This document shows positions 10,124 to 52,828 of a stretch of 64,000 bases of DNA, in pieces (the stretch's first letter is position 1; each line of letters opens with the position of its first letter). Below the pieces are notes generated by a model, which ran no database searches, was not told the origin of the DNA, and saw nothing but the letters and a program-made list of their open reading frames with translations. The position numbers were made by a program, and so were the translations under genes. The DNA is from Paragordius varius (lineage: Eukaryota; Animalia; Nematomorpha). The DNA lies in the NCBI GenBank assembly GCA_964247055.1, contig OZ176055.1:3100001-3164000 (forward strand), written 5' to 3'.

Positions 10124-12302
10124 CTGTATTCATAAAGATCAAAAATAAATGACGACACTGAATTCCTGTAATAATTGTTTTGATAATAAAACTTTTACAT
10201 CATTCAAACATAAAAATGAATTTGAATATTTTTGGATTATGATATTGATAAGCTTCTGTATCATAAAAATTTAGGGATCATGTTGCATATATGGGAATCA
10301 AACCGAAAAAACTGATTTTAAGGAGTCAGCTGTTTTAGATAAATTTTTAATATAAACAGTTGTTATAAATTGGCTAAAATTTTGAATCATGTGCTTCGAT
10401 AAGTTTTGATATTTAATAAGTGAAGCGTCTGAGATGCAATTTAAAACAAATAAAAGTATTTAGCGGGGTTTTAATTATTAAATTTCCCAATATGTAGAAA
10501 CGCTTAGTTTTAATTAACTTAATGTGAAAAAGATATTTGATTAACCTCTTATGTTTTAATTGGACATATAAAATTGAATCAAGTTTATTACAATATGATG
10601 AAAATAAACGTTAAGTGGAAAATATGTATAATTGGAAGAAAATATATTAAGTTTCTCCACCTAAGGTGTGGAACGGAATGTTAGAATGACATTGCATTTA
10701 AAGCTGGGCCTATTTTCATACATTCAATTTAGCCAGATTTTCCCGATACCTCCACACCCAATTTTATTAATTCAAAATGTATCATTTGTGAAATTCATGA
10801 TCAACTGTTGAAAATATTTAAATTTACAAAAACACAAGCTTTAAATTAATATTTCACTGATTAACCAAGATTTAGTTCGATTTAAAAGCAAAAATTTTAT
10901 AAAGAAAATTGTCAAAACACCCGACTATATTTTTCTCAAATGCAGTAAATTTATAATCTTATGCTAAAATAACTCCATTCCCAAAATTTGGCACACTATA
11001 TCTATAATATGTAATATTGGATGATACTTGTTGCAACATTATAAATATTTATATGCGCGACGCATAGAATTTTAACTGGCATAAAAAATAAAGTTGTCGC
11101 AAAAATTATAAGCACCTATCTATATCAAATCTCATGGTAGAAAAAATGGTTTCTTCTCCTAAAATCGTTAATAAATTCTGAAAATGTATTTTACGTTGGA
11201 AAAAAAACAATGTGACGATAAATACAAAAACATGGCTAAGTCGTTCGTCCCTGTTTTTCGGATTTTTAGTTATCACTATTTTCTATATTTTAATATTATC
11301 AAAAAATACTAAAATTTAAGTTATTTAGCATATGTATCCAAAAATACGTTAGTTTTTTCATCTATTCACTGAAAAAGCATCTTTATATTATCAACTAAGC
11401 ACTATGATTTGCATTGATAATAATTAATATTGGATTATTTTTTATGTTGATGAAACAAACGCTTGTTACTCATGTTTCATTTTTAGGAAATTTTCTGTAG
11501 AAGGATACAAAATAGTATTTTTGTAAAAATGGTACTCTTAGATTTCGTAAATAGCACACCTAGTTTTTAAAAATGCCACAAGGCTTATTTCAAATATTTA
11601 TTTACATATCACAATTCATTCACAATTGGAAAACTTATTAGATGATATTGAAAAAAAGTGTGTGATTGAGCCAACATATTAAAATTATGTTGTAATTATG
11701 CATATAAAATACATTGGTGACAAAATATATTTGGATTGTTCCGCTAGATACAATAATATTCATACATAAAAATAAGATTAATGAGAAGCTCTATCAAAAC
11801 ATACGATATATTTTGTGTAAATTAAATCAAATCGATTGTAAAATACACATTGATAAAGTAAATATAGTGGCGTACAGAGTGTATATATTCAATTTGTTTG
11901 CAATAAAATTAAAAGTTGAAACATAAAAAAAACATATTTAATTGGACAATTGGTATTTTTACACCATACGCTACTGATATATATGGTAAAAATTATACAT
12001 AAAAGCATAGCCAAATAAAAACAATGATTATAAAAACTGTAAAAACTAAAATAAAAATGTTTTTAATAAAGATAGCCATACCGTTTAAAAACCTCGTTTT
12101 TTTATTTGACCTTTATCATTACGATTCCAAGATATATAATAGAATGTATTTAAATATCTGATTTTGCAACTTAGCGATAAGTAAAATATTAAAACCAAGG
12201 TGTAAAAATGTATGACTGTCTTCATTAATCATTATTTTGTTTTTTGTGATTTGTTTTTATAATTAAAAAATAACTATTTTTTCCATATTAAGATAAAAAC
12301 CA

Positions 12303-15300
12303 TTATCCCAGCATAAGACCTATGCCTAGTCGAGAGGCAGCTTTTGCATGATTGAAAGCACCACTAAGGGTTAGCGTTAAAGGAAGGGGTGGACAAATTT
12401 TATGTTCTAACGTTGCGCCTAGCGTGCCATTCGTATCCAAATATGCTCTAAAAGTTACTATAGGTTGAGTCGCAAGACCTGGTGGGACTAAACCGCCTGC
12501 TTGCGCGGAACTTCCAAATGGGTTAGTTAAACTCCCTTCAGTTCCACCTCCGCCCGCGGGTAAATCACGAAATGATATTTGATATCTAATAGGTAGAGAG
12601 AGAGGTTTTAGCTTAATTTAGTGACGAAAAAACCTATGTGAAATATTAAGATTTGAGCATCTCAAAAAATTGTAAAAAATAATGATAATAGATGACTAAT
12701 AGGTAGATGTGCGTTAATCTTACAGCCAAAAATGCTGTAAATGGTTTTTTTTTCAAAAATTATTAAAGGATAGTAATAATGTGTGTTAACCCATAGTTGG
12801 TATAAATTATTAACGATATTTAATCTGTAGGTTTTAGTTAAAGTTTAGTGTCAAAAAAACTGAGTCAAAAATCGCTAATGAATAAGTACAGTGGTGATTG
12901 CCTAGTTTTGTTTTTCGTATACATTATATTTTTTAATTTATTTTGTAATTTTCAGCATGCGCATTCCTAAGCTCTAAAAGCTCATAATATGCATTGTTTG
13001 ACTAAAATAATAAAACTATAAACAATTATGCACGAACAATTTAAGAGATTTCGCTTAGAAATAATGAATGTTAACAAGCCCGAAACTAGTATATAAATAT
13101 TATTGATGAAATATGTTTACAATATTTTAGGTTTTTTAGTTTAAAATTATATAAATAGGATATTCTTTGAGATGGTTGTAATAATATAGTCGGCTGATAA
13201 AAAAATTATTACTAATTTTTGTATATTGATTACTGTTTATTTCTCCAATATGATCATAAAAAGTTTATTATATTCGTTATATGTAATTACTTTTACCATA
13301 ATTCAACTCAGGGGCGTCCAAGACAAATGGCTTGGTGGGCCGCATTTGATATATGAATTGGTATTTATTAATGATATATTAAAATTCAAACATATGACTG
13401 TAAAATACAAACACAAACATATTTTCTAGCTTGTTACTTATTGGATAGACTTTTTCAATACAAGATTTTGTGAGAAAAATTTTGTAAATTATGGATTTTA
13501 ATATTTTTCGCGTAACGCATGTTGAACAGCCTGACCAATCCTTTTTCGTATTAAATTCCCCATTTCAATATAAAAATGATATATAATTTCTTTAAACATT
13601 TAAAAATTAATATAAAATGATTTGTTTGCAGCTTTAAAATATTTTATAAATAAATTTAAGATATTTCATTAATATTAATAAATATACTACAGATTTTTAT
13701 AATTTTTAGTTAAACTACTGTGTGTGTGGGAAGGTGTTGTTCTAAACTTTAAACGATTATAACTTAAAAATTAGGAAACCTTATTTAAAAATGAAAAAAG
13801 TGTATAATGATCAATAGGAGCTAATTAATATATTTATTATAAAAAGTTCATTGTCTTAAATAAATGAGGAAAAAAATTATAAAAAAATATACTCACCCAA
13901 GCATAGCAACACTTTCCCCAAAAGCCGGATTGGTTTCAACTTCACAACCAACTTGAATAGATGTTGTCCTCGCTGCTAAAGATGATTCATCCATCACATG
14001 TGATAGAGCATTCGAAGGCGGCGCATTTTCCAGCATTACTAAAAACGCAATCCAAATAGGAAAAATTTTGTTAAATTTAGACACTTGTTTTTGTCAAAAA
14101 CCATTAACTTAGTAATCTACAATTAAAATATTTTTATAGGCAATTTTTGTTGTTCACACGAGTTAAAATAGATTAAAATATATATCAAGCATCAATTTAT
14201 AAATTCGCAAAAGTGTATAAAATGTGTATGAACCTGTTTTATGTAAGCTTAAGCTTTCACTTTTAACGTACGATTTATATTTTAAATTAACTTAAAATTT
14301 ATATTACTAAATATTAATATTTGATTACTAAAAACTATACTTAGTTGGCTGGTCAAAAAGGGCAAATGTATAAAGTTTAAGACAAACAATGTTTAAAATT
14401 CAAAAATTACAATTATAATAAAAAACATATATCGTGTTCCACTCATCTGAAAAAAAAACAAAATAAAATAATTTACTCAATTGAATATGTTAATTTATAT
14501 GTATTATAGCGAATGAGCAAAATTTTAAACAAGTTTAAAAATTAAAAAAAAAAAACAAAGATATCGGCGTAAAATAAGTGGTACAATAAAATAAAATTAA
14601 TATATCGAATCCAAATTTTCGCCAAAATTAAAAAGATATAGACGTGAATTAGTAAATATATTAAATTGAATATAAAAAATGGAGAATTTTTTCAAAATAT
14701 ATTTGAAACATAAATAGTATATAATCAAACTTTTATCAGTAGATTGATGTTTTGAATCTGGGTTGGTGTGATGTATGAGCAATGAAGAATTTAAGTTTCG
14801 ATATTTATCTAAATCGTGCCAATAACTAGCTTTAAGACCAGCTGATCCGAAAGAACCCGATGCCACATAGTTTAAGCCTTAAAAGTTAGGTAAAATTACA
14901 GTAAGGTATGATATAAAACAACAAATGGTTGCAGCCTTCTACTCAAAAATTTATCTTTTTAACAATTATGAACAAACTAAATTTAATACGATATGCTAAT
15001 GTAAAAAATTGGCAGATTAAAATGATAAATTTTCTTTGACGCTCTCTCACTATAGTTCAATTTTTTTCAAAAAACGGTTCGGTTCCAGAATATAATTTTA
15101 CCAAATATTTATAATTTCGGTTGAATTAAAAAATTACAAATGACTAAATAGCCACAAAAATTAAATGTATGCTACTTTTGAAAATCACTAGATAAAATTG
15201 TGACTTAAATAATCTCGAAATAATAAAAATATAATAAAAAATTAATTTAAAGATCCATTTCAAACAGCGATTCCGGTCACCCAAAAAAAATTATGTCAAA

Positions 15301-17540
15301 CAAAAAAACCAAATTGCCCTACATAAAACTTGCATAAAGAAATATCCCTCTTAAACTTGTGAAACTTAATCAGAAAAAGAAATAATCCAAAAACTGTCGA
15401 CAAACAAATAAAATAAAAACCAGTAAATCGCGCAGCTAAACTCAACATTGCATTGTGTTTGGGCATGGCGGCTCCACTCATTGGCCCAAAAGGGGACATC
15501 ATAAAACTGCTGGCCCCACCTGAACTAGCTTCTGGACTCCTGACAAAATAAAAATGAAAAATATTTCATGCCATCTATATAAAAAAATTGGGACATCGGT
15601 TTCAATTAAATTTATGCGTCATTAATTATAAATTGTAGTTTTGAGAAGTTTCACATCAAACTATTTGATCGCCATTTATAATGTATAAATTTTTACTAAG
15701 TTTTCCTACATATAGTTTGTTTTTTGTCAAATTTGAGGAAGAATAAATACAGCAGAAGTAACACGGATAAAATGGCTAAAATCCAATTTTAAATATGAAT
15801 ATTTTATCCAATTCATAAATATATATATATTTGGATATTGTTTACGCTGAAGTGTGATTGTATTATTATATATGGAATCAATCAGCAAAAATTATATAAT
15901 TTATTATAATATAATATTTCGATTACTACAAGTAATCATTAAATATTTTTACTTTATAATTTAAATTTTAGTTTATATTTTAATTTTATTTTTACGTTTG
16001 ACAAAGATTACTTGTGGTAATCGAAATATTATATTATAATAAATTATATAATTTTTGCTGATTGATTCCATATATAATAATATATTTATTTATTTAGTTA
16101 ATAATAGGTAAGAAATGCAAAAATTGTTCAATCAAAATTATGTGAGTCTTTAAAAGCTACTTTAATTTAGTATTTACTTATTTTTTCGATTTTTAGTGTA
16201 GATAGATATATACATACCTATGGTACATAAGTTCCGTCCCTAGAGCAAATCGCGGTGTTATATTGTGCAAATATTGCGCAACTAAGATGCCAGAGGTGAG
16301 ACTTGAAAGGAAAGATGTGTCCTTGGACATGAGTTGTTTAGTTGAAATATTTGGGCTTAGCGTTACTGAAGCCGTGTAATCGGAAGTTCGGAAATCAGCA
16401 CTGAATTGATTTGCAACCATTTTATGGTTTTGAATCTGTAGTAAGAAATTTAAAATATTTTAAAATAATCTGTTGAAAAAAACTTAAACCTAAAATTTGA
16501 GATACACCAGAAACATTAAATACTCTATGTTAAAAAAATAACATATATTATCAACCAAGGTTTTTGAATATTTTTGGGTAATAAATTTCACATGAAAAAA
16601 TTTCATAAAGTAATGAAATATACCAATATTAAAAGTGAAAATAATTTAGTACAAAATATCAGCACATAATTGGTTAGCAAACATTTCATGGCTTTGACCC
16701 TTAATTCCCAATTAAAAAAATATTGTAAAATCTTCTTGCAATTTGACTAAAATCATAAATTAAATCTAGCAAAGATGATTTCCATTGTATAGTTATTAGT
16801 CTATGGAAAAAATATTTATTTAAAAAATTGGATGTTTCACGTATTAAAAATTAATGCAGATAAATAATCTTTTAATATTGATTTTATTAATAATAGCTTA
16901 TAAAAAATGGAAAAATTTAACAAAACATAATTTTTAATATTAACAATTCGCTCAAACACTTATTTTTTGATCGAAAATCGGTTCCGAAAAAAGATGAGTC
17001 AGATAATTTGATAAAAATATAAAATAAATGTTTTTGGGATATTTTTAATACCTAATAGAATATAACAAATAAAATAAATTGATTTTGCTAAAACCTGAGA
17101 TATAAGTTTGTATCTAATTTGTTCGTGTGGCTGATGTATGATTTGAGCATTTAAATTTCCGTTTATATCCATGTCACCCAAAAATACCGGGAAAGCCTGG
17201 TATAAAATAAAAAATTACCTCATAGGGAGAATATTGTTTACTTCCAACATAAGTAGCACCAAACCTATAACCTGGATTTAAATTTCCAACTGAAAGAGTA
17301 TGAGAGACTTGAAAATGATTGCTTAATCCTTTGTTTATTAATATTTTAACACCCTCGAATGTCATTGGAAATACGTCTTAAATAAAGAATTATAAAACCT
17401 TTACATTTTCGATGCATCTCCTCATAAGTACCGGGATTTTGAGAGAAATCTAGTTTAGATCTGAGATGATGATCTTTGTCCTCCTCTAACACATTTGCCG
17501 TCGGGGACTCCGTAATAGTTGCAGCAAGCACGTTTCCCAT
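12303..17540 (-). CDS. TOMM40: Mitochondrial import receptor subunit TOM40 (8 exons, about 436 aa)
   Basis: Exons 17540-17399, 17376-17219, 17196-17095, 16435-16218, 15539-15421, 14877-14731, 14038-13897, 12585-12303 total 1311 nt in frame. Motifs: MGNVLAA, NPGTYEEMHRKCKDVFP, FEGVKILINKGLSNHFQVSHT, YRFGATYVG, GDMDINGNLNAQ, GILVAQYL, LGATLEHKICPPLPLTL, LGIGLMLG*. The exon 7 acceptor has an in-frame alternative near 14082. Confidence 0.93.
13309..13533. mobile_element. hAT-like MITE, family A copy 2 (inverted, in TOM40 intron)
   Basis: caggggcgtccaagacaaatggcttggtgggccgc matches the reverse complement of the 6090-6126 end; the other end is gttgaacagcctg. Confidence 0.5.
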
Positions 17541-17666
17541 ATAGAACCGAATTAAAAAAACAAACTTGGGACAAAAAAAGTTAACCGAAAATAATTTATA
17601 TTTTTAAAAAATTATTTATAAAATTATTTAGTGCAACACATCTGAATTTTCAAACATGCTTTTGTG
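17541..17666. promoter_or_regulatory. Putative bidirectional promoter/5'UTR region between TOM40 and ACBD3
   Basis: 126 bp separate the divergent ATGs at 17540(-) and 17667(+). Inferred from geometry only. Confidence 0.55.
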
Positions 17667-20600
17667 ATGGTAGCAAACGTAGACGAATTCGATCTGGAAA
17701 ATTGCGACAAGGATGCGTTGTTTCATTTGGGCATCCGATTCTACAGGGGTTTATTGTATTTTGATTTTTTAGAGAAAAAATTAGGGAAGGCTGTAAACTT
17801 AACCTATCAAGATAATCTCAAACTTATGTCACTTGTTAAACAAGGTTTACATGGTCCATTTGACTCGAAAACCGCTCCTCCTTTGGGCTATTTTGACGTT
17901 ATTGGAAATCATAGAAGGTTAAAACAAATTTTAATTTGATTTAGGGAAGCATGGAAGTTATTAGGCGACATGTCCAAGGAAAAGGCAAAAGAAGAATATC
18001 TTTCCATTTTAAAGGACAAATGTCCCACATTCCTACCCTATATTGCGGCAAATAGCCTCTATCTCTCGACAAAAAATAAGTATATTATATTTTTTAATTT
18101 ATTAAAAGTTACAAAGAATCGCAATACAATGGCATAGCAGATGAACCATTGGAATCAAGATTTTTGGACGATAATGATAATACACCCAAAACGAATGGAT
18201 TAAACTGGTAATTATAGAAAAATTGCTTTTTTAAACTTAAGACTTTTTACATTTATACATATATATATATATATTAACGCGTTACAAATCGATAAATTTT
18301 ATTTATATGTAATCCTACTAATATATATTACCTACCTGTCTAACTAATCATAGTATATCCAAATTATTTATAAGCTATTATAATATTATATTTTTTCAGT
18401 CAAGATATGACGATGGTTTATTCAGATAACGCCTATTTTACTCAACAAATTTTCCCACAAATTCAAGCTTATGCCGCTACACTTTACCCTAATAATGAAA
18501 TGCATCAAAAACTGTTGATTGATCATTTATCTGCACAGTTTTTTCAGAACCTTCAATTACTTAACAATAACTCAAATAATAGTTCTGAAACCCCAAATTC
18601 TATTCCAGAAAAATCTGAGGCCCAGAACATTGAATTGAATAGCAACAAAACAGCTGATTCAGCTAATGGTCACAGTTCCCATTATGTTAATGAACCCCTA
18701 AATATGAATAATAGCGATATGACTAAAGGTAAAGATAATTTGGATGAAAATCAGCACTCTACATTTCTTCAAACGGATGGAATTGAAAATGTTGTCACAT
18801 ACGAAGGTAAATCTGAATTTTTTTATTTTCAAAATTTTTTTTGTGATATAATTACAGAATTAGTGGTCTTTGAAATGTGAAGTGGAATATATAATATATT
18901 ATCTATATTTTTAAACTTTATTTTTACAAAAAAAGGTTGTATTTAGCAGCGTTGGGATTCAATAGAGATTTAAATGAAATTTGGTTTTTCCGGGAGTTGT
19001 TTGATTAATTATTTCTTGATAAAAAAATGTTTACATATTTTCATGGTTTAATTAAAAAATAAGAGAATTTAAATAAGTTTGTAAGCTGAGACATATATGT
19101 ATTATGAGAAAAGTCAAGTTTTGGTTTTTTAAGATTGTTTAAATTTAGTTTTTAACAATTGTTAGTGATATGTTTGTGATATGAGTGTTTAAAACTGCGC
19201 TGGATAGCTATAAAATATTGGCAATATGATTAGGAGAGTGGACTTAGTTGTATTTAATGATTTCATGAAAAATACTTTATTTTTCGATTTTATGGAATAT
19301 TTAACTAACGAAAAAGGGGTGAGTGGGTCATATTTGTAATATGATTACAAAAAGTCAACATTATGGTTTTTTTCAAGGTAGTTTTTATTTGATAGTTTAA
19401 TAAACCTTTGGTTATATATGTGTGTGTTTGTATAATGATGAATGTTTAAAAACGCTGTCCAGATATAAAATATATGTGATTGGACAAAAAATATTTGGTT
19501 TTGTTTGAAGATATAAATTTCATGAACAATGTTTGATATTGAGTAATTACAGTATGCATTTTAATGGTTGCTTATTCCACACTATAGTTGAATAATTTTC
19601 AACACAATACTGTATGGAAAAAAACAACAATATGTTCATTAAACAATTTTTTCTTGTTTTTCCATACCTTCTTGTGTTTCAAATTGCCCAAATATAGTGT
19701 GAAATAAGCAACCATTAAAATGCATTCTACAATTAGATTTAGGTAAATGGTAAGCTTGTTATATCATTTATAAAGTGAGAATGTAATTCTATGATTTAAT
19801 TTTTCTTATTATTCGTGTGTTTGAAAGAGTGGGTGAGTTAGCAAATTTATCTAAATTTTGTTTTTTATTTAAATTTTGTAGTGTTTGTAACATATTGTAT
19901 ATGGAGATGTTGGGAACATATTTTTTTCTTGTCCTTCTAAAAACTATAATAACCCAATTTTATCATCTAATTTGTGACAAATTATTAATCCTTATAAAAT
20001 TATACAATTTTGTCCGACGAAACGTTCAATTTAAATTACTACGCTGTTTTATTTGATACTTTTTTTTTATAAAAAAAAAATTTGCCTGTTTATATATTAT
20101 TCAATCAGGTCTAGAAAAATTATGCTCTACAATTTTTTATTTTATTTTACTATAGTTGGTGGTGCAATCGAACCGGCCACAATTTGGTTTAAAACGGATG
20201 ATTTGAAATCATTCAAACAGGACGTAAAACAAAATCACGCTGAATGTATGCTTAAAATAGGCCATGGCGAGACTGTTACGGTATATATATATATATTTTT
20301 TCTTTAACATGTAACATTTGTTTTGTTAAATTAAAAAATGATTTGTAATTGATATATATAACGCTTTTTACAAGAGTTTTGATAAATTTTAATTGGGACA
20401 TATTTTAATTCAGATCAATTTTATTTACAATTTTAATATGTTTATGTTTAAACTTTTTTAGCACTATATAATTTTCATTACCGATTGTATTTTGTAGTTT
20501 TTTAATGCTAACTATTAATTTGATGTTGATTTACTAGATATTAGTAAAATATTTAAACATTTATTATTCATTATCGTGATCGAGAATGATTTTACTGATT

Positions 20601-23590
20601 TGTCTGAAAAATTGCATGTTACAACATATAAATATAGAGCATTAAATCAAGGATTAATGTGAATTTAAATATTACTTTTTTGTCACTATTTACGGTAAAA
20701 AATGTAAATATACAAACGCAAAAATATAAAGACAATTTTTTTCATAAGTCAACCATACTTTTTAAACCTTACTTTATCATATAAAAATCATTTAAATACT
20801 ATCGTAAAATACATAATTGATTGACCTATTCACATCTCTATTTTTAACTTTACAGTTTAAAACAATACGTTATATCTGAAAAAAATCGATATTAAAAAAT
20901 CTGTTTGTCTTTATAATATTTTTACGTTTTGTCTGTACAATTTCAATTTTTACTATATCTAATTTTAAGATTATTGGAATGATATTAGTTGAAAAAATAA
21001 CTCATCCATATTTTGATATAGATCAGGGTTCCTACCCATTCGAATGGTAGTGCGCTGTTTTGGGAATTCGCTACAGACTCATATGATATTGGTTTTGGTG
21101 TTTTCTTTGAATGGTGTACACCTTACACTGATAAAATTAGCGTTTACATTTCCGAATCAACTACGGCCAGTGAGGAGGATGAAGAGTTTGATATTGAAGG
21201 TTTGATTAGTTTTTTTCAAAAAAAGTATTTTTATTGTTTTTAAAGTTGGAATTATAATTTAGCTCTAATTGAATTATTGAAGGGTGAATTTTCGATTATT
21301 ATATGTAATCTTTGTCAAATGTTAAAATATAATTAAAAATTGAACTAAAAATGTTTTTAAAATTTTTCTTCAATTTGATTCGTTTTACCACTATATTATT
21401 GTTTTCTACATTTTTTCATAACATTTATTCGACAGATTTATTATGAAACTATTGAAATTTTAACAAAAATTAAACATATTTTTTTGGTATAACCCATTTA
21501 TTTACAATACTTAACTTATCCTATCTGCACAAAAAAGTAACTTATTGACACTTAAATATTTTAATTTTAAAGTTTAAGTTGTACTAACCTCAAACAAACA
21601 AATATTTTAACCCCAATTCATTTAAAATAGTTTTTTTACTTTTTTTTCTTATTTTATGCAAAATTAATTTTATTATTTAGATGTAGACGACGATGAACAT
21701 CATTTGAGTAAAGAAAATGCTTTACCAGTTGTACAAAATAATATTTCAACCCCAGAATACAGCGTTTCAGAGGATCCTGAAATGGGCTTACCTGCTAAAA
21801 CTAGCAACGCTTTCCTTGGTTCGCACAATACCACTACTCATCACAATAATAACAAAAATAAAATGAAATCTAATAAGCAAAATCATTATTCAATTGCCCA
21901 AAGTCAACATTTGAATGAAGGTTAGTTAGTTTTGCCTAATGTGATAGAGTTTTGAAAAATATTTCTTGATTATTAATTAAAGATTAATTTAAGATATGCT
22001 TTTTTTCGTGAAATGGATAACAAAATTAAATTATACGCATCGTAATTATTTTTTAAATGTAAAATTGATCCCATTCGAATCTAAAATTAAATTTTGAAAA
22101 ATATTGAATAAGAAAATAAAATTAAATGAAAATTGGTTTTTGTCTACAATTTTAACAAATTAATTTTCACACCTTAATGATTATTATTTTTTATCCATTT
22201 TTCCGTCTAAATAAGATAAAAGTCTGTATTTTATAAATCCTTTTTATATATTTTTTAGATGTTTCATACTAACAAATATATGTGAAAAAAGTAGTATTTA
22301 ATATTAGACTTTAATTGTAAATTAAAGGACATTTTTACACTCTTTCTTTTCTGGTTATTTTTGAATTAAAACAATCAATATAAAATTGTTATCTTACATT
22401 TTTTTACTTTTTTAGATATGACCTAACGCTGTTTTTATTAGAAATAGTATTTGTCGATATCAGTATATATAAGTGTGTAATTTAATGGTTGCTTTTCACA
22501 CTATAATAGGGAAATTTGCACCACACTAGTGTATGGAAAAACAGCAAAATGTCCAATAACAATTATTTTATTCTTATTTCCATACATTTCTGTGTAATTG
22601 CCCTACTATAGTGTGAAACCATTAAAATGCATACTGTATACATAACGTGAAATGCATCTTTTATCACATGTCAGGAAAAATATTTTAATTCCTATAATTT
22701 TTTCTTATTTTTAAGATCCTCTCCTAATTTCGATTTTGGGAAGAAAATATGGCTTATATCATTCATTACAAAAGAATCCCATTTTTTAAAATAGCTATTT
22801 TTTTAATTTCTATCGCTAAAAACACCCAAGAATCACAATACATTTTTGTAATACAGTAGCGTGTGTGTAAAACAAATTTTTTCCACAATTAAATATACAA
22901 ATCTAGGTTGTAAGAGCGGAAGCAATTGTTTAATCAACATTTTGTTGTTTTTACCCATATACTAGCGTATTACAAATTGGCCAACAATATTGTGACTAGG
23001 CCAGCATTAATGTTCATACTGTAAAATATTATGTGAAGGTTTCATCTATATAATAGTTTTGTAAACATTTGATAGTTCCTTATACAGTATGCATTTTAAT
23101 GGTTGCTTATTTAACACTATAATCGGCAATTTGCAACACAGTAGTGTATGGAAAAAAACAACAATATGTTGAATAAACAATTTTTTACTTTCTTTTTCCA
23201 TACATTACTGTCTTGCAAATTGTCCTACCATAGTGTGAAATAAATAACCAATAAAATGCATATACTGTGTTTCATACCAATTTTTCTTTTTTAATAAAAC
23301 ACCCCTATTTAGATTATTCTAGAACATCGTCCCCTTCAACCCTTAGCCATACCAGTCTAGTTTTACCTGATAAAATAAATTCAAATGATGACCACCCCAA
23401 AAATGAAAATCCAACAAATTTACCCCTAATTGATGTCATAGTACCGTTGGAGAGACGAGATTGTCATGTAAAAATTTGTGCTGGTTCCCATCCCTACCCA
23501 GGTCAAGGGGTATACTCCCTTAAATTTGATAACTCATATAGTTTGTGGCGAAGTAAATGGTTATACTACAAGATATATTACACAAAATGA
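17667..23590 (+). CDS. ACBD3: Golgi resident protein GCP60 / acyl-CoA-binding domain-containing 3 (ACB + GOLD; 8 exons, about 570 aa)
   Basis: Exons 17667-17917, 17945-18079, 18109-18207, 18400-18806, 20156-20280, 21022-21199, 21681-21920, 23313-23590 total 1713 nt in frame. ACB domain: [21 protein letters not shown]...[35 protein letters not shown] domain: GHGETVTIRVPTH...[20 protein letters not shown]...RRDCH...[35 protein letters not shown]. Confidence 0.93.
19550..19729. mobile_element. Tc1/mariner-type MITE, family B copy 1
   Basis: About 180-bp near-palindrome: (TA)CAGTATGCATTTTAATGGTTGCTTATT...AATAAGCAACCATTAAAATGCAT. Four copies in the window. Confidence 0.75.
22461..22636. mobile_element. 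Tc1/mariner-type MITE, family B copy 2
   Basis: Same core (aatggttgc...cacactat...gtatggaaaa...ttccatac...atagtgtgaa...accattaaaatgcatactg-TA); left end degenerate. Confidence 0.7.
23085..23267. mobile_element. Tc1/mariner-type MITE, family B copy 3
   Basis: TA-cagtatgcattttaatggttgcttatt...aataaataaccaataaaatgcatatactg; ends about 45 bp before the last ACBD3 exon. Confidence 0.75.
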
Positions 23591-23750
23591 AATGAATGCA
23601 AAAAGATTTTTTTCTATACTTAAATTCATAAATTCTGTGTGCTCTTTTTATTAAAATCATAATTTTTTACATAAAAATGAAAAAAAGTGATATACTGGGA
23701 TAATATTTATAACTGTTATTGTATTGAAAAATTTGCTTTAAAATAATATA

Positions 23751-23931
23751 CAGTATGCATTTTAATGGTTGCGTATTTCACACTATAGTTGGGTAATTTG
23801 CAACAGACTAGTGTATGGAAAAAACAACTAAATGTTAAATAAACAATCTTTTTCTTTCTTTTTTCTGATACACTCCTGTTGCAAATTGCACTACAACAGT
23901 GTGAAATAAGTAACCATTACAATTCATACTG
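23751..23931. mobile_element. Tc1/mariner-type MITE, family B copy 4
   Basis: TA-cagtatgcattttaatggttgc...accattacaattcatactg-TA; starts 160 bp downstream of the ACBD3 stop. Confidence 0.75.
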
Positions 23932-25617
23932 TAAATTTTTCATACGAAATAAGTGTTTAAATTATAAAAGAAATGGAAAATTTTTTTGGGAATGCAACAT
24001 ATTATGAATAAAATTTTACACATCGTATGGGATTTATATTCATTTAATTGTACAAAATATCAGGCATATTATAATTTTTTTATTTAAATACATCAACACC
24101 AAATATTTCTGGTTTCATTTTTGTGATATTAAAATTGATTTCATATAATTTTCATGAGTATATACGATAAAAAACCTATCTGTGTATATTTATATTTAAT
24201 TGATTCATATTTTATTTAATTTATAGATATATTATGGTTACAAACAACTAAACAAAATATTTTAGATATCACAATTTGTCATTTATTTAATTTTTGCAAA
24301 GGTGTAAAATATTTGGATATAAGTTTTTTATAGATAATTTCAAAATATTATATGTATATATTTTATACATTTACCAGTGATGATAGCCAAAACACTATGA
24401 TTTTTACATATAATTAATTTTTTTTACCTGTTTTATGCTATATGATTTTGCCGAAAGGATAAATATAATATCTGTCAAATTACCAAAAAATGACCATATC
24501 CTACACACTAGATTTATCAACATTCATATAATATTATAAATATAATTTTTTTATTATTCTACATTTATTTCTACGATATAGTATGTATTATTTAAATTTT
24601 TATTATGTCAATTTTTGTTATAATAAATTATATATGGGATAATATGTTATTATATTAAATTGTATTTTTTGTAAAAAATGGCTAAAAATTTAATTGAAAA
24701 AATAAAAAGAATAATTTACCATTTCTTTTTACATTATATAAATATCTGATTTAACAATTAAACCCGAACCGTTACAAATTGTATATTATAGAGTTTTAAT
24801 ATTTAAACAATAGACAGAAATGTTAATATACTCATAAAAATCTTTGAATAGTAGTAAAATTTATTATAGGGTCTAATATTTGGTCATAGAAAATTAAAAA
24901 TTTTATTAAATACTGCGGAAATGGCCTATTAAGGAAAAAATTTAAATTATATTATTGATTCCCAAATATTTGCCATGCACATTGGTAGGAAATTTTTTTA
25001 ATCAAGAATATATATTTTTTATTTTTAGTTGAGTCTTTGACACTCACAATGCTTTTTGACAAAATTTGGGAATGAATAAAATAGTTTTTTTACAACAATC
25101 TCCACATCATTTACATTACCAGACACTTGTCATTATAACAATAATCTGAAAATAATTCCATCAACATAATGGACTTTTACCATAATAAATTAACGAACTC
25201 ACCGATTTCTACAGATGGTCTTAATTTTGAGCTAAAAAATAGTTTTTAAATAGTTGATACAACCAAGACTCAAGATTCGCTGTAGGATACGGTCTGGTTG
25301 TAAACGCTATAAAAATAATTTAAAAAGTAATATTTTTTGGTTTAGACTTGGTCAACAAAATTTTTTCGATGGAATATGGATTTATTTTATAAATATCACA
25401 TAATATATTCTCATGGGTAGAAATACATAATTTTGATAAATACACAGATATTTGTTGCGTTATCATCAGCTATAAAGTTGTAATACTGTTTATCTGATTC
25501 CGTTTATGACATTGTAATAGTTATGAATTAATACACACCCAAAAACATTTTGAAAAACCAAAAATAAAATTATTAACAAAAACTGCAATTTTGAGCATAA
25601 TTATCCTTTAAAAACAT

Positions 25618-27862
25618 TCATATTCTTCCGATTTCGCGTAATTTTTCAACTAATTGCTCCACAGTTTCGACTTTAACGCCAGCTTTTCTAACAGGGGGTT
25701 CTGAAACACTGTTTATAACAATTTTGTTGGCCCATTCTTTCACATCTATCCCGAGTTGATCAGGCGTTTTTTTGTCAATCGGTTTTTTCTTAGCTTTCTA
25801 TTTATTCAAAAATATAGATAAAATTAACTATTTTTAAATGTTAAGGGTAAAGTTGGGGTTGAGTAATCAAAAAATAAAATCCGTTATAACTGCTTTTACT
25901 GCAGTTAGATCAAAACGAATTAATATATAGAAATGCAAATAGGAATATGGTCTAAAAACATTTTTCCACCTTATTAGACATTGATTATGACTAAATATTA
26001 GCATTTTTATTCTCATTTTAAATTAAATTAGTAGTATGCTTTAAATACATAAATTATTGCCGATTTAATTTACTCAAATTATAGCATATCGAACAGAAGT
26101 TTTTATCTACTTCATGATGAGGACTTATGATTGTATGTGAATTTACTCAGAATCGATAAAAAATTTAAAATAATCCACCCAGATCATAAAAATGTTAATC
26201 AGTTATAATTTTAATTTAAGTCACCAAAAAATATTTTATGTTATAATTTTTACCATAATATTCGGGAGCGTAGCATAACGTGGTTCATTAAGTCTTAAAT
26301 CTGCACTTAGTACGCAAGGAATTTTAACCGCTATATTTTCCATCCCGGAGTCAACTTCTCGTTTAACCTTTAACCAACCGGATTGTTGGGGGTCTCTTTC
26401 AATTTTTGATGCACAAATGGCCTGTAAACATAATCGGAAAAATTGAAATTATATTGGACAAAATGTTAAAACTTAAAAAGCAAATATTTTTTTACTTAAA
26501 AAGTCAACCATACCTTTTAAACCTTTTATTTTAACGCATCGTTTTAGATTGCAAAACAAGTAATAAGGATCTAAATTAGTCACACTTCTTTATACTAATT
26601 TAATATTTGTACTATAAATTATGTAGGAAAAATTAAAATTGAAATATATGGTTATCTTTTTAAAAAAATTGTCTTTTAATTTTTATGATTTCTCTGTATA
26701 ATTTTATGTAAAAGCAATGGAATATATGTATACTTAAAGTAAGTCTATGTCATAATTGGCTGTAAACACAAACCAAAAACACATGAATATTCTATTTAAC
26801 TGTGTGTTTTCTTTAAACCAAAAACATATCCATATCCAATTTCACTCTTTTTATGTCCTTAAAATTTATATATACCTGTGGCCAATCAAGTAGGCCCGCA
26901 ATCATTTGAGCCGTTTGGCCGGAGTCATCGTCTATGGCCTGTTTCCCAACTATGATAAGATCGGGTTTTTCAGTTTCCGCGATTTTTGCAAATATTTTAG
27001 CGATCGCGAGTGGGGGAAAGCTTTCATAAACCTTAAGGTCGGCAATTTCGACGTGAATAGCTCTATCAGCTCCCATCGCAAGAGCTGTTCTTAAAGTTTC
27101 CTAGAAAAACAATAATTGGCCTTATTAGAAAGTTTCAGGAAAAGTATGTGTGGAATGAATTTGTTTATGTTAATTTTTAATATTTAACCCTAAACATTTC
27201 AAAATCAACTTTATCTTACCGGAATATCTGCAAATACCCTTAAAGAATCAATTTAAAAACTGTGAATTGACGGGGTATGTAAACGCAAACACAATCGCGA
27301 TTGAAATTAACATTTATTAGTTTTAGCCATAATTTAAATTTGTATGTTTTCTGACTTAATTGTTTGTTTATTAGAAAAATTATGATTCAAAACTTAATAA
27401 AAATATGTAAGGGTAAAAGTTAAGAAAATTAACAAAGAGTAAATTTAAAGAGTGGTTATTAAAAGCATAAATTATATCATCAGGACTATCAAAAACCAGG
27501 TTAGTATTATAAATAACCAGCATAGTGTTAGAAAAATAAAATAATCATTTTTGGTAAAATTTAAAAAATAAAAACACAAAAACGGTTAAAAATAAGTTGT
27601 ATACAAATTTTTATATATACTTGACATTGTGGTGGTCCACATGAAAGCGCAACTATTTCTTTAACCAAACTTTTTTCCTTTAAACGTATCGCCTCCTCAA
27701 GTGCAATTTCACAAAAAGGGTTAACACTATGCTTTATACCATCCGTAAATACACCAGTTTTATCATTTTTAACCCTAATCTAAGTAATATTAAAAAAGTT
27801 TCTTAAACCTTGACGGCATAATCTATAACACGCTTTATTCCAACTAGGGCTTTTAATGACAT
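25618..27862 (-). CDS. ETFB: Electron transfer flavoprotein subunit beta (5 exons, 261 aa)
   Basis: Exons 27862-27809, 27779-27621, 27100-26876, 26421-26254, 25797-25618 total 786 nt. Motifs: [93 protein letters not shown]. Confidence 0.96.
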
Positions 27863-27895
27863 GTGAGCTAATGTATGTTTGAAGAGGCTAGCCAC
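27863..27895. promoter_or_regulatory. 33-bp spacer between divergent ETFB and RRP1 start codons
   Basis: ATG at 27862(-) and ATG at 27896(+). Each is preceded on its own strand by TAGC(T)CAC. Confidence 0.5.
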
Positions 27896-30800
27896 ATGGA
27901 AAAATTTATAAAAGCCATCCAAGATATCTTGATAAACGATATTTATGACCGGAAAACAAATTTCACAAAATTAATTAAACTTTTATGTAGTCAGAAAATT
28001 GGTAACCTCTATTGTTTTTAATAATAAAGATAATTCCCAAATATTTTTAAAGTTATGGAAAGGATTGTTTTATTACATTTGGAATTTGGATAAAACGGAA
28101 AATCCAGTATAAAATTTTTTTTAACCTTAAGCACCAACAAATTGATCTACTACTGAAATTGATTATTCAATTTGATAAAAGGGATTGCGAATTATTTTTT
28201 GATTCCTATCTTACGACAATTAACAGGGAATACAGCCAGATAGATGAATATCGTATTGAAAAATATCTATACGTACAACTTATGATTAAAATTTTAGCTC
28301 AACAGGAAAATGTTTAAAACTATTTTTGAACGAATAATTCGTTTAGGAGAATCGGATTTTAATTTTTATTCAATCCTTGAAACGTTTATGTCAAATAATG
28401 AAATCAACTTATCTATTAAATATCATATATTGGATATTTACATGACAGAATTGATTGAAAAACAAGAATCTACCATAGTAAATGATTTTTATATTAAAAC
28501 TTCTTCAATAAAAATTTATTAAAAAATGAAAGATATAAAGTGACTTAAGTTTACATTGATATTATTAAAAATTGCTGATAATTTGATAGAAGAACAACAT
28601 TGTATGCTAATAAAAATAGTTTAAAAACTTAGGTTCTTTTGCTTTTAGCCAAAAATTTATAAAATTTAGTTTTTTAACCATAAAGACGAACAACAATTGC
28701 TATCTGGTTTCTGAAATCCAGGAATTTAAGTTTAGGGCCAGTAAGGTAACACTCATAATTTTTTGTTTTCCCAGAATAGAGCTTTTACACATTTAAATTT
28801 GTTCAAATACGCTAATCAAAACAAATTATGCATTTAGGAGTAACTCAAATTCAAAAATTTATGGAATTTATAGCCTGTATCTAAACAAATCTTGGAATTA
28901 TGTTTTATATCAGTGTGGGTCGAATCTTTATAGTATAGAATATATATATTATATTTTTAATTTTTTATATACTTTCTTCTAAACAGTTATTTTATAGCAA
29001 CTAAAAATTTTAATAATAATCTATGCCATATATTCGTTACCGGGTTTGCCATTAACGTGGTTCCGAATAAATATTTAAAATTCTCCGATAATATTTTGGA
29101 AATAATTGGTGGCAAAAAAATTAACATAACCAATGATGGACAGTTAGTTTAAAATTTTGGTATTATATATGAGCGTCCTAATGTTAGACGAGCACGAAAA
29201 TCATTTTACGAGCTATCATCTGCCGCGCCAATGTTTCCCAAATATTTTTAATAATTGTTTGAGCTTTATGTAGGTTATAATGAAAAAAATAACTAAAGAA
29301 AACTTAGTCACATTTAAATAATATTTAAGCTTTTGATGATTTTATATTTTTCAGTTCCTTGGCATTTGCTTTAATGAGAAGTTTTTTATGGATAGTATAG
29401 AAATGTCAGAAAGTGATGTTTGGATATTTTCTTTAATGCTTTTACACGTTAACTTCGATATACGCGCTTCAAAATGTAAGGGAAATCTTAAGAATTAAGT
29501 TTAAGGATAGAAATGGGGTTGGAACACAATCTTGTCTTTCTCAGTTATTAGTGGAATTTAGTTCTTTTAAAATGGGTTTTGTAGGATGCGTTTTTGGTCT
29601 AAAGATGTAATAATTCTGTTTGGATACGCCCGCAACAATTAAATTTCCATAATTGGTATCTCATGTGTCAAAAGCCATGTTGAATCTATAATAAGAAGGA
29701 ATAACACCTTATTTTTGAAATTTTTAAGATTATGATTTTAGCATATTGTTTTAACCTAAATTCTGCTAACATTTAATATTTCTATGGATTTATTTCTTAA
29801 AAACTTATTTTGAAATAATTACAATAATAATTAATGGCGGGCATGCGCTATATTCTGACAATAATGAATTAGGTAGGGAGAAGAGAAAGAATTATTAGGT
29901 CAAATTTGGATAAGAAAACATTTTGTACGGGATAAATATAAAAATTACAAATAGAATGTTTGTATAATTTATCAAAGTGTCTTAATTTCCAATTTAAAAG
30001 CAATCCACACATTACTATTGCTTTAGGCGAAAGGCCAGATTATAAACCTATTGTACTTAAAGTGTGTCTTTTATTTCCAATGATTAAAGAGTTCAGGGAC
30101 CAACTTGAAGCGCAAATGGATATTGAAATTCTTGGAAGAAGGAATAAATTTTAATTAGCTTTATATTTTTTCTTATGATTCAGGTTGAAATTCCAATGAT
30201 TAACAATCTTTTGCTGTTTCTGGAGATTTTATTAAATATTTTATGGACATAAATAGGCACAAATATATAAAACTATTTTTTTCGGCAAAGTGAAGATTGA
30301 ACATTAAATTTGCCAAAATTAATTTTGGGGTGGTCCCCATACAAAAAAGGTTAAGCTGTTTTAGAAATGGATATTTTGTGAGTTAAAAATGATTTTAGAA
30401 TGCATAAGATGTATATACTATCGATAATCAAATCTTTAATATAACTTTTCAATAATCAATTGTTTTCGTATGTATATTTTGGCGTTTTACATTTTGCATT
30501 TTATAATTTTTTCTTTAGGGTGAATCATTGTTTATACAATTGTTGGACCCCTTCCTTTCCGCCATACCCAAAATTAAAAAGTAAATTTATAATGATAACA
30601 ATAAGTAATGTTATCGTTAATTTCACTAAATCAAAATATTATATTTTTTTATAATCATATAATTAACTTACGTTATAAAAAATTAACAGTAATTGAATTG
30701 AGTCAAAAACAAAAAAATGTGCACAAAGTTTTTAAAAATGATAAACAAATTGTATTTAAGTGCTTTATTACATAAAACAAAATTTTACTTAATTTTAATT

Positions 30801-51100: not shown

Positions 51101-52828
51101 AATAAGTAATATTACGTATTTTTGAATAAATTTTTTTATATTTCGGTTCATTAGTGTTATATAAGAAACTTTTGCCATGGTTTCAATTTCTTCTATATCT
51201 TTTCAAATATTTAATTTTAACCGACCTAGGATATCCAACTACCCCAATTTGAATCGAAGGACCGAAATGAATGTGTTGTATCCAAGTGTTAACCTGTTAA
51301 CCTTTTGAAAATGTTATCTCAATTTTATTATTTACATCCCCAAATCGAAACATCGCAATTTTGCATTCTCTTAGTAAATATATTATAGCAGACGACTTTG
51401 TAATTTTTCAAAATAACTTAAATATAAATAATTTTTACAACAGTATGCATGTAACCCGTTCTTGACGTTTCTTCAACGTTTTTCAAATAAGTTGCAATGT
51501 ATGAGTACATATTTCAATTTATAAAGGAATCAAATAAAGCATAAAATAATTAATCTTTTAAAAACTATTTAAGAATTTTTTTGGAATAATAACAATTTAT
51601 AGTAAACAGTTTTTAAATTTAAATTAAACATTTTAACGTTATATTTGAAACGCGCGTACATGGTTAAAGATATTATAATGAACTACGAGTCCAAAAACTG
51701 CGGATTATTAAATTATTTGAACTTAAAATACCACCCGCTTTATACTAATTTTACAGGGATATTATGAAAGTATAAACAAAATTTTATAAAATATATAAAT
51801 AAAAAGCTAAATTTAATTTAAATAAACAATGATCTGAATTTTTTTAACAGTTTAAGCGTGTTTTTATATATATTTGTTACAATTTGTTTTTATCAGATTA
51901 AAAATTTTCTTCTATAATAGATTGGCCACTCAACGGTAATAACCGCAAAAAGCGAAGACCGTACACAAAATATCAGACACTTGAGTTGGAAAAAGAATTT
52001 TTATATAATGCCTATGTGTCCAAGCAAAAGCGATGGGAGCTAGCCCGCAACTTAAGTCTAACCGAACGTCAGGTCAAAATTTGGTTTCAGAATAGGCGTA
52101 TGAAAAATAAGAAATCTAGTCAGAAGAATTGCAGTTCTACTGATTCTGGCTTAAGTCAAGCCGTTAAAAATACGTTGATGGAATGTTACAATCATCACTC
52201 ATCTTCAGTCGAATATGGTGGTGGACAGGGCAGCACTATGAATAATTCAAATGGGAATAATATGTATTGCAATTACAATAATAATCATCATACAAACAGC
52301 ACAAATATGTCACATAATGATCCTTTTTTCATTCACCTCCAACAACAACAACAACAATATACTGGGACAAGCGGTGTTTTTCAACAAAACTCTACTACAG
52401 CATCCATATTAGACCAGAAGGGAGGAAATCTGCCTTACTCCAATACCAATAATTGTACATATAACAATATTGAAAATAATGGTGATAACCAAGAAGAGAT
52501 AAACTTTAAATACCGTGAAATAGAAGGGCACAGCAGTAATAGGAAGTCAGGTTTTTCAAATTCAAATTCCGAAAGTTCCTATAATTATCTTCCTTATAAA
52601 AATGGACTCAACAATGAATTTGCAAACAACAATTACCAATATAATGTATCCAGTGAAACCACATCTGGCCCGACGCTTTTAAGCTGTTCTGCTGATACAA
52701 CTTTATCTATGTTTGGAAATATTGTATCTTCGCCTACGACTGAGAGTACTTTTGAGGAGAATCCGTACAACAAACTCTCATCCCAATTTCATTTTACAAG
52801 TGTTAGCCATCATCAAATATCATCTTAA
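45182..52828 (+). CDS. Abd-B: Posterior Hox protein, Abdominal-B type (2 exons, about 724 aa)
   Basis: Exon 45182-46448 (Asn/Ser-rich, ends G|GTAAAA, phase 1) joins exon 51921-52828 in frame: [65 protein letters not shown]. This is near-identical to the arthropod Abd-B homeodomain and has the conserved upstream W. The pairing of the two exons is inferred from phase; extra exons cannot be excluded. Confidence 0.88.
49839..49980. repeat. Long inverted repeat/hairpin in the Abd-B intron
   Basis: Perfect 25-bp stem (49883-49907 / 49918-49942) with a 10-nt AATAATAATA loop, extended by imperfect outer arms. Confidence 0.85.
50790..51292 (+). repeat. Dispersed ~500-bp repeat, copy 1 (probable non-autonomous TE)
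   Basis: Collinear with 62968-63467 (aaacggtcccaatttaaatttat, tcaaactactt, aattttaagggtaaaatta, agaaaaagcggtttattttgtattattttt, ccccaatttgaatcgaag). Confidence 0.8.

Follow-up and report, generated by a model that had tools for sequence, protein, structure and literature searches.

Introns of 20–29 nucleotides in the horsehair worm Paragordius varius and their probable removal by an essentially standard major spliceosome

Can an animal with Hox genes carry spliceosomal introns of little more than 20 nucleotides and, if so, what removes them? The question is raised by a stretch of 64,000 nucleotides from the genome of the horsehair worm Paragordius varius (C6:3100001-3164000, where C-numbers denote pieces of the assembly; referred to below as the window), which has a base composition of 27% G+C. 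A first-pass annotation of this window had proposed eight GT-AG introns of 22–29 nt in the genes TOM40, ACBD3, ETFB and RRP1, and had attributed them to a modified spliceosome handling a bimodal population of introns. The analysis reported here indicates that these are most likely ordinary U2-type GT-AG introns that have shrunk to about 20–29 nt in this horsehair-worm lineage, and that an essentially standard major spliceosome probably removes them by intron definition.

All eight segments read GT...AG on the coding strand, and their coordinates and lengths (22, 22, 27, 29, 29, 28, 25 and 25 nt) were borne out when checked on the sequence. Seven of them shift the reading frame if retained and the remaining one, of 27 nt, contains an in-frame stop, so that none can be read through. 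The exon pieces beside the segments match the Pfam profiles Porin_3 (in TOM40), ACBP, ETF and Nop52. At six of the eight sites the boundaries were fixed by homology at the level of single residues, and removal of these six introns restores a conserved protein without gain or loss of a residue. The claim that reading frames are restored only by removal therefore holds by homology at six sites; at the other two, one in ACBD3 and one in RRP1, it follows from reading-frame logic and other boundaries are possible.

The two TOM40 introns and the first ETFB intron were placed by their GT..AG ends together with homology to the human proteins. TOM40 lies on the reverse strand (12306-17540; located by local tblastn with the TOM40 protein of the horsehair worm Gordionus and by enumeration of junctions), and its first exons (17399-17540, 17219-17376 and 17095-17196) are followed by exons separated by long introns. 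Intron 1 (17377-17398, reverse strand, 22 nt, phase 1) splits a codon: exon 1 extends to residue 91 of human TOM40, codon 92 is divided, and exon 2 starts from residue 93. Exon 2 covers residues 93-145 and exon 3 starts from 146, placing intron 2 (17197-17218, reverse strand, 22 nt, phase 0) at human 145|146. ETFB is also on the reverse strand (25621-27862; exons 27809-27862, 27621-27779, 26876-27100, 26254-26421 and 25621-25797), and the junction left by its intron 1 (27780-27808, 29 nt, phase 0) corresponds to 19|20 of human ETFB.

The other three well-fixed introns are on the forward strand. An ACBD3-like gene (17667-23587), with an ACBP domain followed by GOLD-like exons, has a first intron of 27 nt (17918-17944), the one with the in-frame stop; besides the GT..AG ends, the ACBP profile runs unbroken across it, reaching position 52/53, passing a split codon and continuing from 55. 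RRP1 intron 2 (28107-28131, 25 nt) was fixed both by human RRP1A and by the Nop52 profile. Residues 5-21 of exon 2 align with RRP1A residues 52-68 and residues 11-45 of exon 3 with 83-118, giving a junction at RRP1A 72|73, and the profile is contiguous at 62|63. RRP1 intron 3 (28273-28297, 25 nt) was placed by the Nop52 profile, which extends to about position 110 in exon 3 and resumes from about 114 in exon 4, an agreement within 3–4 positions.

The two remaining introns are plausible. For ACBD3 intron 2 (18080-18108, forward strand, 29 nt), placed by reading-frame logic, the acceptor is ambiguous: splicing from this donor to 18159 would give an intron of 80 nt, and to 18399 one of 320 nt. 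For RRP1 intron 1 (28002-28029, forward strand, 28 nt) the acceptor is fixed and the donor ambiguous, with donors at 27987, 27990, 28002 and 28014 all in frame with the acceptor at 28029. Some intron is required at both sites, and the exact length given for each is a best guess from the length class.

Longer introns in the same genes, put at 0.1–2 kb by the first-pass annotation, were confirmed at 0.2–1.4 kb for ETFB (520, 454 and 456 nt), for ACBD3 (intron 3, 18208-18399, forward strand, 192 nt) and for TOM40 (16436-17094, 659 nt, then about 678 and about 543 nt, and longer ones further on).

The strongest evidence for the tiny introns comes from orthologous TOM40 positions in other animals. 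When TOM40 exon 2 was compared with 1.84 billion representative proteins there was one stand-out match, at 77% identity, the TOM40 of the nematomorph Gordionus sp. m RMFG-2023. The next-best full-length relatives of the Gordionus protein were arthropod proteins with at most 50% identity, and a word search with Gordionus TOM40 gave no other hairworm TOM40. For Gordionus, for Daphnia sinensis and for the spider Parasteatoda, the annotated TOM40 protein was mapped exactly onto the animal's own genomic locus, and sharing of intron position and phase was compared for this gene. Both tiny introns are shared in position and phase with Gordionus and the spider, and the first also with Daphnia. At intron 1 (after ..HRKCK, phase 1) the length is 22 nt in P. 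varius, 44 in Gordionus, 62 in Daphnia and 2015 in the spider. At intron 2 (after ..SPxE, phase 0) it is 22 nt in P. varius, 43 in Gordionus and 3033 in the spider, Daphnia having no intron there. A third shared position has 659 nt in P. varius, 45 in Gordionus, 64 in Daphnia and 2180 in the spider. By this comparison, the tiny TOM40 introns are old introns whose length varies about a hundredfold among animals, down to 22 nt here.

The three short Gordionus introns of 44, 43 and 45 nt (OX940787.2:1184873-1208128, locus positions 10137-10180, 10339-10381 and 10484-10528) suggest a minimal-intron class near 44 nt in that worm, as judged from its TOM40; the gene has one further intron, of 2047 nt, and its locus is about 27.6% G+C. 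The 3′ half of P. varius TOM40 (12306-16447) aligned with Gordionus TOM40 in five blocks, and between these lie stretches of about 0.5–1.4 kb rich in stop codons. The matching 3′ half of the Gordionus gene has one intron only, and the stop-rich stretches look like extra long introns and not like loops inserted into the protein.

The same positions bear on the idea that the segments are removed or bypassed without a spliceosome, by precise somatic excision from DNA or by translational bypass. Nothing specific favours this; the ends are GT-AG, not TA or the other repeats of known DNA-excision systems, and the TOM40 positions are orthologous to ordinary introns of other animals. We give such a route next to no credence.

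Could the segments be artefacts, that is, insertions in the assembly, pseudogenes or chance GT..AG strings? Strings of this form are common in DNA of 27% G+C. Homology-free scans that joined open reading frames (264 kb, three versions, one of them filtered by codon usage) showed no excess of GT-AG over control dinucleotide pairs; because DNA of this composition makes such scans too noisy, they speak neither for nor against the introns. At sites fixed by homology the expectation is different. By our own arithmetic from the base composition of the window, GT and AG occur by chance at two fixed ends with p of about 0.0024 per site, and all six homology-fixed sites would be GT...AG with a probability below 1e-10, even with about nine placements allowed for each. 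All six do read GT...AG, and two of them match introns of other animals in position and phase. DNA sequencing runs contain 0.83–0.84 of the window's words, and the exons are intact and conserved. The further cases described below, which bring the total to 28 across six contigs, are alike in length and composition. An artefact is thus close to refuted, and we consider it very improbable.

Those further cases came from six-frame searches with the Pfam profiles Pkinase and Cpn60_TCP1 for pairs of exons that abut or read through stops; the searches covered the entire assembly of 44 pieces and 110.6 Mb. Thirty-two loci were taken, and conserved motifs of the kinases or chaperonins served to place their junctions. 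Because loci that hinted at tiny introns were favoured, the sample does not give the genome-wide share of the class. It yielded 20 further introns of 20–29 nt outside the window, for example in a PLK-like gene (21, 24 and 23 nt), a CDK (29 and 25), CHK1 (24), ERK (26 and 27), AMPK (23 and 26), TAK1 (26, 27 and 23) and a chaperonin CCT subunit (24), and also in an SLK-like gene. Continuity of the Pfam profile was confirmed at all three of the outside junctions that were checked. With the eight in the window, the compiled set comprises 28 introns of 20–29 nt, all GT...AG, distributed by length as one each of 20 and 21 nt, five of 22, three each of 23, 24 and 25, four of 26, three of 27, two of 28 and three of 29. 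The shortest, a 20-nt GT-AG intron in a divergent kinase-like gene (C5:7288400-7289650, reverse strand, locus positions 247-266), remains a candidate only, as neither of its flanking exons has Pfam support. An apparent open frame of 757 aa in a chaperonin gene was rejected as not a real open reading frame.

Introns of 30–42 nt were not seen in the sampled loci. Longer introns at the same loci measured 43, 55 or 67, 71, 73, 75, 89, 93 and 112 nt, and those of chaperonin genes were mostly 380–1600 nt. With 450–1400 nt in ETFB and TOM40 as well, most sampled introns are not short, and although introns below 30 nt recur, the genome does not match a dicyemid- or myxobolid-type regime in which the median lies below 30 nt. 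Of the proposed bimodal population, a discrete class of 20–29 nt beside long introns therefore stands; the distribution is not simply one of two modes, since lengths of 43, 55–75, 89–93 and 112 nt lie between the class and introns of hundreds to thousands of bases. A sharp peak at the minimal length with a long tail is normal for invertebrates. The unusual point is where the peak of minimal length sits, not the shape of the distribution.

In every gene whose introns could be ordered (including loci L024, L029, L032 and L036), the tiny introns are the 5′-most and lengths rise downstream. From 5′ to 3′ the lengths are 22, 22, 659, 678, 543 and so on in TOM40; 29, 520, 454 and 456 in ETFB; 24, 71, 73 and then hundreds in CCT; 21, 24, 23 and 112 in PLK; 26, 27 and about 1000 in ERK; and 24 and about 380 in CHK1. 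The pattern is a clustering and not a rule, for the introns of several other chaperonin genes are all long. It contrasts with most animals, where the longest intron is usually the first.

What signals do the tiny introns offer to a spliceosome? The 28 introns are 7–28% G+C, and their interiors contain 3% G and 7% C. At +3, 18 introns have A and 10 have T; at +5, three have G. The last exon base (-1) is a G before 14 of the introns, and the bases from -3 to -6 are rich in T. An A is found at -7 and at -9 in 17 of 28 introns each (p of about 0.009 for either position, with no correction for the 12 positions compared). In ETFB and TOM40 the long introns begin with GTAT, GTAA or GTTT and end in YAG after a mostly T-rich tract, and comparison of these with the tiny introns revealed no second type of splice signal. 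The two length classes thus share their signals, and nothing points to separate systems of recognition. U12-type introns either have AT-AC ends or combine the 5′ consensus GTATCCTT with TCCTTAAC at the branch site; that 5′ consensus is present in 0 of the 28.

The inventory of spliceosome components, a check put forward with the first-pass annotation, was run on the whole genome and recovered all five major small nuclear RNAs (snRNAs), with best scores of 177.7 bits for U2, 124.3 for U1, 107.4 for U4, 91.3 for U5 and 114.4 for U6, well above threshold. The best U2 copies retain the GUAGUA that pairs with the branch site, and the best U1 copies retain ACUUACCUG. SF1 is present (SF1-HH, 74.9 bits), as is a U2AF65-like gene with four colinear exons matching U2AF_lg, the large subunit. 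No U12 snRNA was matched anywhere in the genome, a result that would fit a lost minor spliceosome; as the search had no positive control it proves nothing. U2 genes are numerous, with 35 matches above threshold. Several lie about 7–8 kb from contig ends (C1:15223126, C4:7260, C6:8570, C6:10107039 and C8:6857), a dense U2 cluster occupies C3:257000-530000, and U1 copies are clustered at C6:565000-633000.

These results bear on whether removal of the introns needs machinery special to the lineage, such as an auxiliary factor replacing U2AF where an intron has no room for a polypyrimidine tract, or altered SF3B or U2AF35 contacts. Some points favour this explanation. Pairing between U1 and the 5′ splice site is limited to GT and one or two further bases, though U1 has its full recognition sequence, and only about 13–15 nt separate the 5′ end from the putative branch A. 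The missing U12 match could be added to these points, with the limit on that search given above. Human introns of 43–56 nt are reported to use SPF45 in place of U2AF. However, the components just listed are present, U1 and U2 are canonical, and one set of signals serves long and short introns. In addition, myxozoans with 22-nt introns keep a canonical U2 and U2AF, according to a September 2026 survey of 51 animal genomes (PMC13644364). Special machinery is accordingly unlikely, though of the alternatives we take it the most seriously, and on these grounds the modified spliceosome of the first-pass annotation is not supported.

The reading that we consider likely is removal by an essentially standard major spliceosome. 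Each tiny intron would be defined across its own length with minimal signals, and its branch adenosine would lie about 7–9 nt upstream of the AG. That the introns are actually spliced is what the genomic sequence predicts. The minimum for the lineage may have fallen from a length like that in Gordionus, about 44 nt, to some 22–26 nt after or during the split from the Gordionus line, while other introns of the same genes would have expanded to hundreds or thousands of bases.

Real introns might also be retained often, inefficient splicing producing frameshifts and stops that lead to nonsense-mediated decay, as a form of regulation or as a tolerated burden. Every one of the eight introns in the window gives a frameshift or an in-frame stop when retained, and very short microsporidian introns have a median splicing efficiency of about 25%, a figure cited in the survey (PMC13644364). 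Against frequent retention, the host genes are essential housekeeping genes (TOM40, ETFB, PLK, CDK and CCT), which often carry two or three tiny introns in succession, and the losses from inefficient splicing would multiply from one to the next. Frequent retention is improbable on these grounds.

Several observations weigh against removal by the standard spliceosome, or against parts of it. Two of the eight boundaries, at ACBD3 18080-18108 and RRP1 28002-28029, are ambiguous. The enrichment of A at -7 and -9 is weak, given its uncorrected p values. The protein inventory covers only the presence of SF1 and of a U2AF65-like gene. Candidate RNA runs under the same species label contain next to none of the window's words, and no spliced protein of P. 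varius was found in the protein collections searched with TOM40 exon 2 and Gordionus TOM40.

Other features of the window concern the host genes and the position of the animal. The genes with tiny introns stand head to head, with 126 nt between the start codons of TOM40 and ACBD3 (17541-17666) and 33 nt between those of ETFB and RRP1 (27863-27895). The 5′ leaders must therefore overlap or be extremely short, and promoter space would be shared. RRP1 exons 1 and 4 had no match among solved structures (PDB), exon 1 has no detectable homology, and the downstream exons of the gene were not found, ten downstream reading frames showing no Nop52 match. A homeobox exon of Abd-B type lies at 51986-52828 on the forward strand and matches positions 15-57 of the Pfam Homeodomain profile. 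Among solved structures its best match is Drosophila Abdominal-B, at 84.5 bits versus 60 for Hox-9, which fits the ecdysozoan-type Hox gene described by the first-pass annotation. Genuine-looking tiny introns in an ecdysozoan are likewise borne out, the closest relative being the nematomorph Gordionus.

A full-text literature search gave no paper on intron length in Nematomorpha, and the Gordionus genome paper makes no mention of introns. The survey detected no introns below 30 nt outside the myxobolid myxozoans and one dicyemid, ties these introns tentatively to parasitism with tiny bodies and compact genomes, and expects further animal groups to follow (PMC13644364). There is about an even chance that hairworms, or at least P. 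varius, are a third independent animal lineage with introns below 30 nt. They would then be the first such case among ecdysozoans, and also the first among large animals whose tissues are complex. On the same proposal the class would have arisen recently within Gordiida, by rough halving of a minimum of about 44 nt while neighbouring introns expanded, and the 5′-most tiny introns near closely spaced divergent start codons would hint at a cap- or promoter-proximal constraint on intron size or recognition.

The tiny introns of P. varius are shorter than those published for any animal outside two groups of tiny-bodied parasites. Horsehair worms are parasites, but their adults are macroscopic and free-living and have muscle and nerve tissue, and here a single gene combines 22-nt and kilobase introns. 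If the reading is right, extreme shortening of introns is separable from compaction of the whole genome and from simplification of the body, and the same sites, 22 nt here and 44 nt in Gordionus, offer a contrast between close relatives in the minimal intron under an apparently standard spliceosome. A gene predictor with a default minimum intron length would break many P. varius genes.

How does this class compare with known systems? Nematodes, insects and Gordionus resemble P. varius in having a sharp class of minimal introns with a long tail. The minimal intron is about 47 nt in Caenorhabditis elegans and about 60 nt in Drosophila. The minimal peak of P. varius is about half that of these animals and of Gordionus; the Daphnia TOM40 introns are 59–65 nt. 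Nematomorph genomes studied up to 2024 were all of 200–300 Mb (10.1101/2024.06.11.598342).

The first-pass annotation correctly listed dicyemids, ciliates, nucleomorphs and microsporidia as lineages with ultra-short introns, and lacked the myxobolid myxozoans described in the survey (PMC13644364). Ciliates, nucleomorphs and microsporidia share with P. varius introns of 15–30 nt and a recognisable spliceosome but are unicellular or remnants of endosymbionts, and several of them have no introns other than tiny ones, which hardly vary in length (PMC5014332; PMC13644364). Dicyema japonicum is, like P. varius, a parasitic bilaterian with sub-30-nt introns at conserved positions and with reduced signals; dicyemids are, however, spiralians of about 30 cells whose genomes are compact and contain hardly any introns that are not short (PMC6736024, as cited in PMC13644364). 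The reduced GTa...AG pattern of P. varius, with its weak A's before the AG, is the one given for Dicyema as well as for myxobolids (PMC13644364). P. varius, by contrast, is an ecdysozoan with a genome of 110.6 Mb and many kilobase introns.

The closest likeness in the introns themselves is with the myxobolids Henneguya salminicola, Thelohanellus kitauei and Myxobolus, in the account given by the survey (PMC13644364). Their GT-AG introns are also about 20–30 nt, little beyond GT and a following A is left of the 5′ signal, the 3′ signal is likewise reduced and has weak A's upstream of the AG, short introns adjoin each other, and U2 and U2AF are canonical. In myxobolids, however, short introns are the majority, with medians of 22–27 nt according to the same source, whereas in P. 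varius they are a minority within genes and most sampled introns are hundreds of bases long. Myxobolids are reduced cnidarians; P. varius is a macroscopic ecdysozoan with mitochondria and Hox genes.

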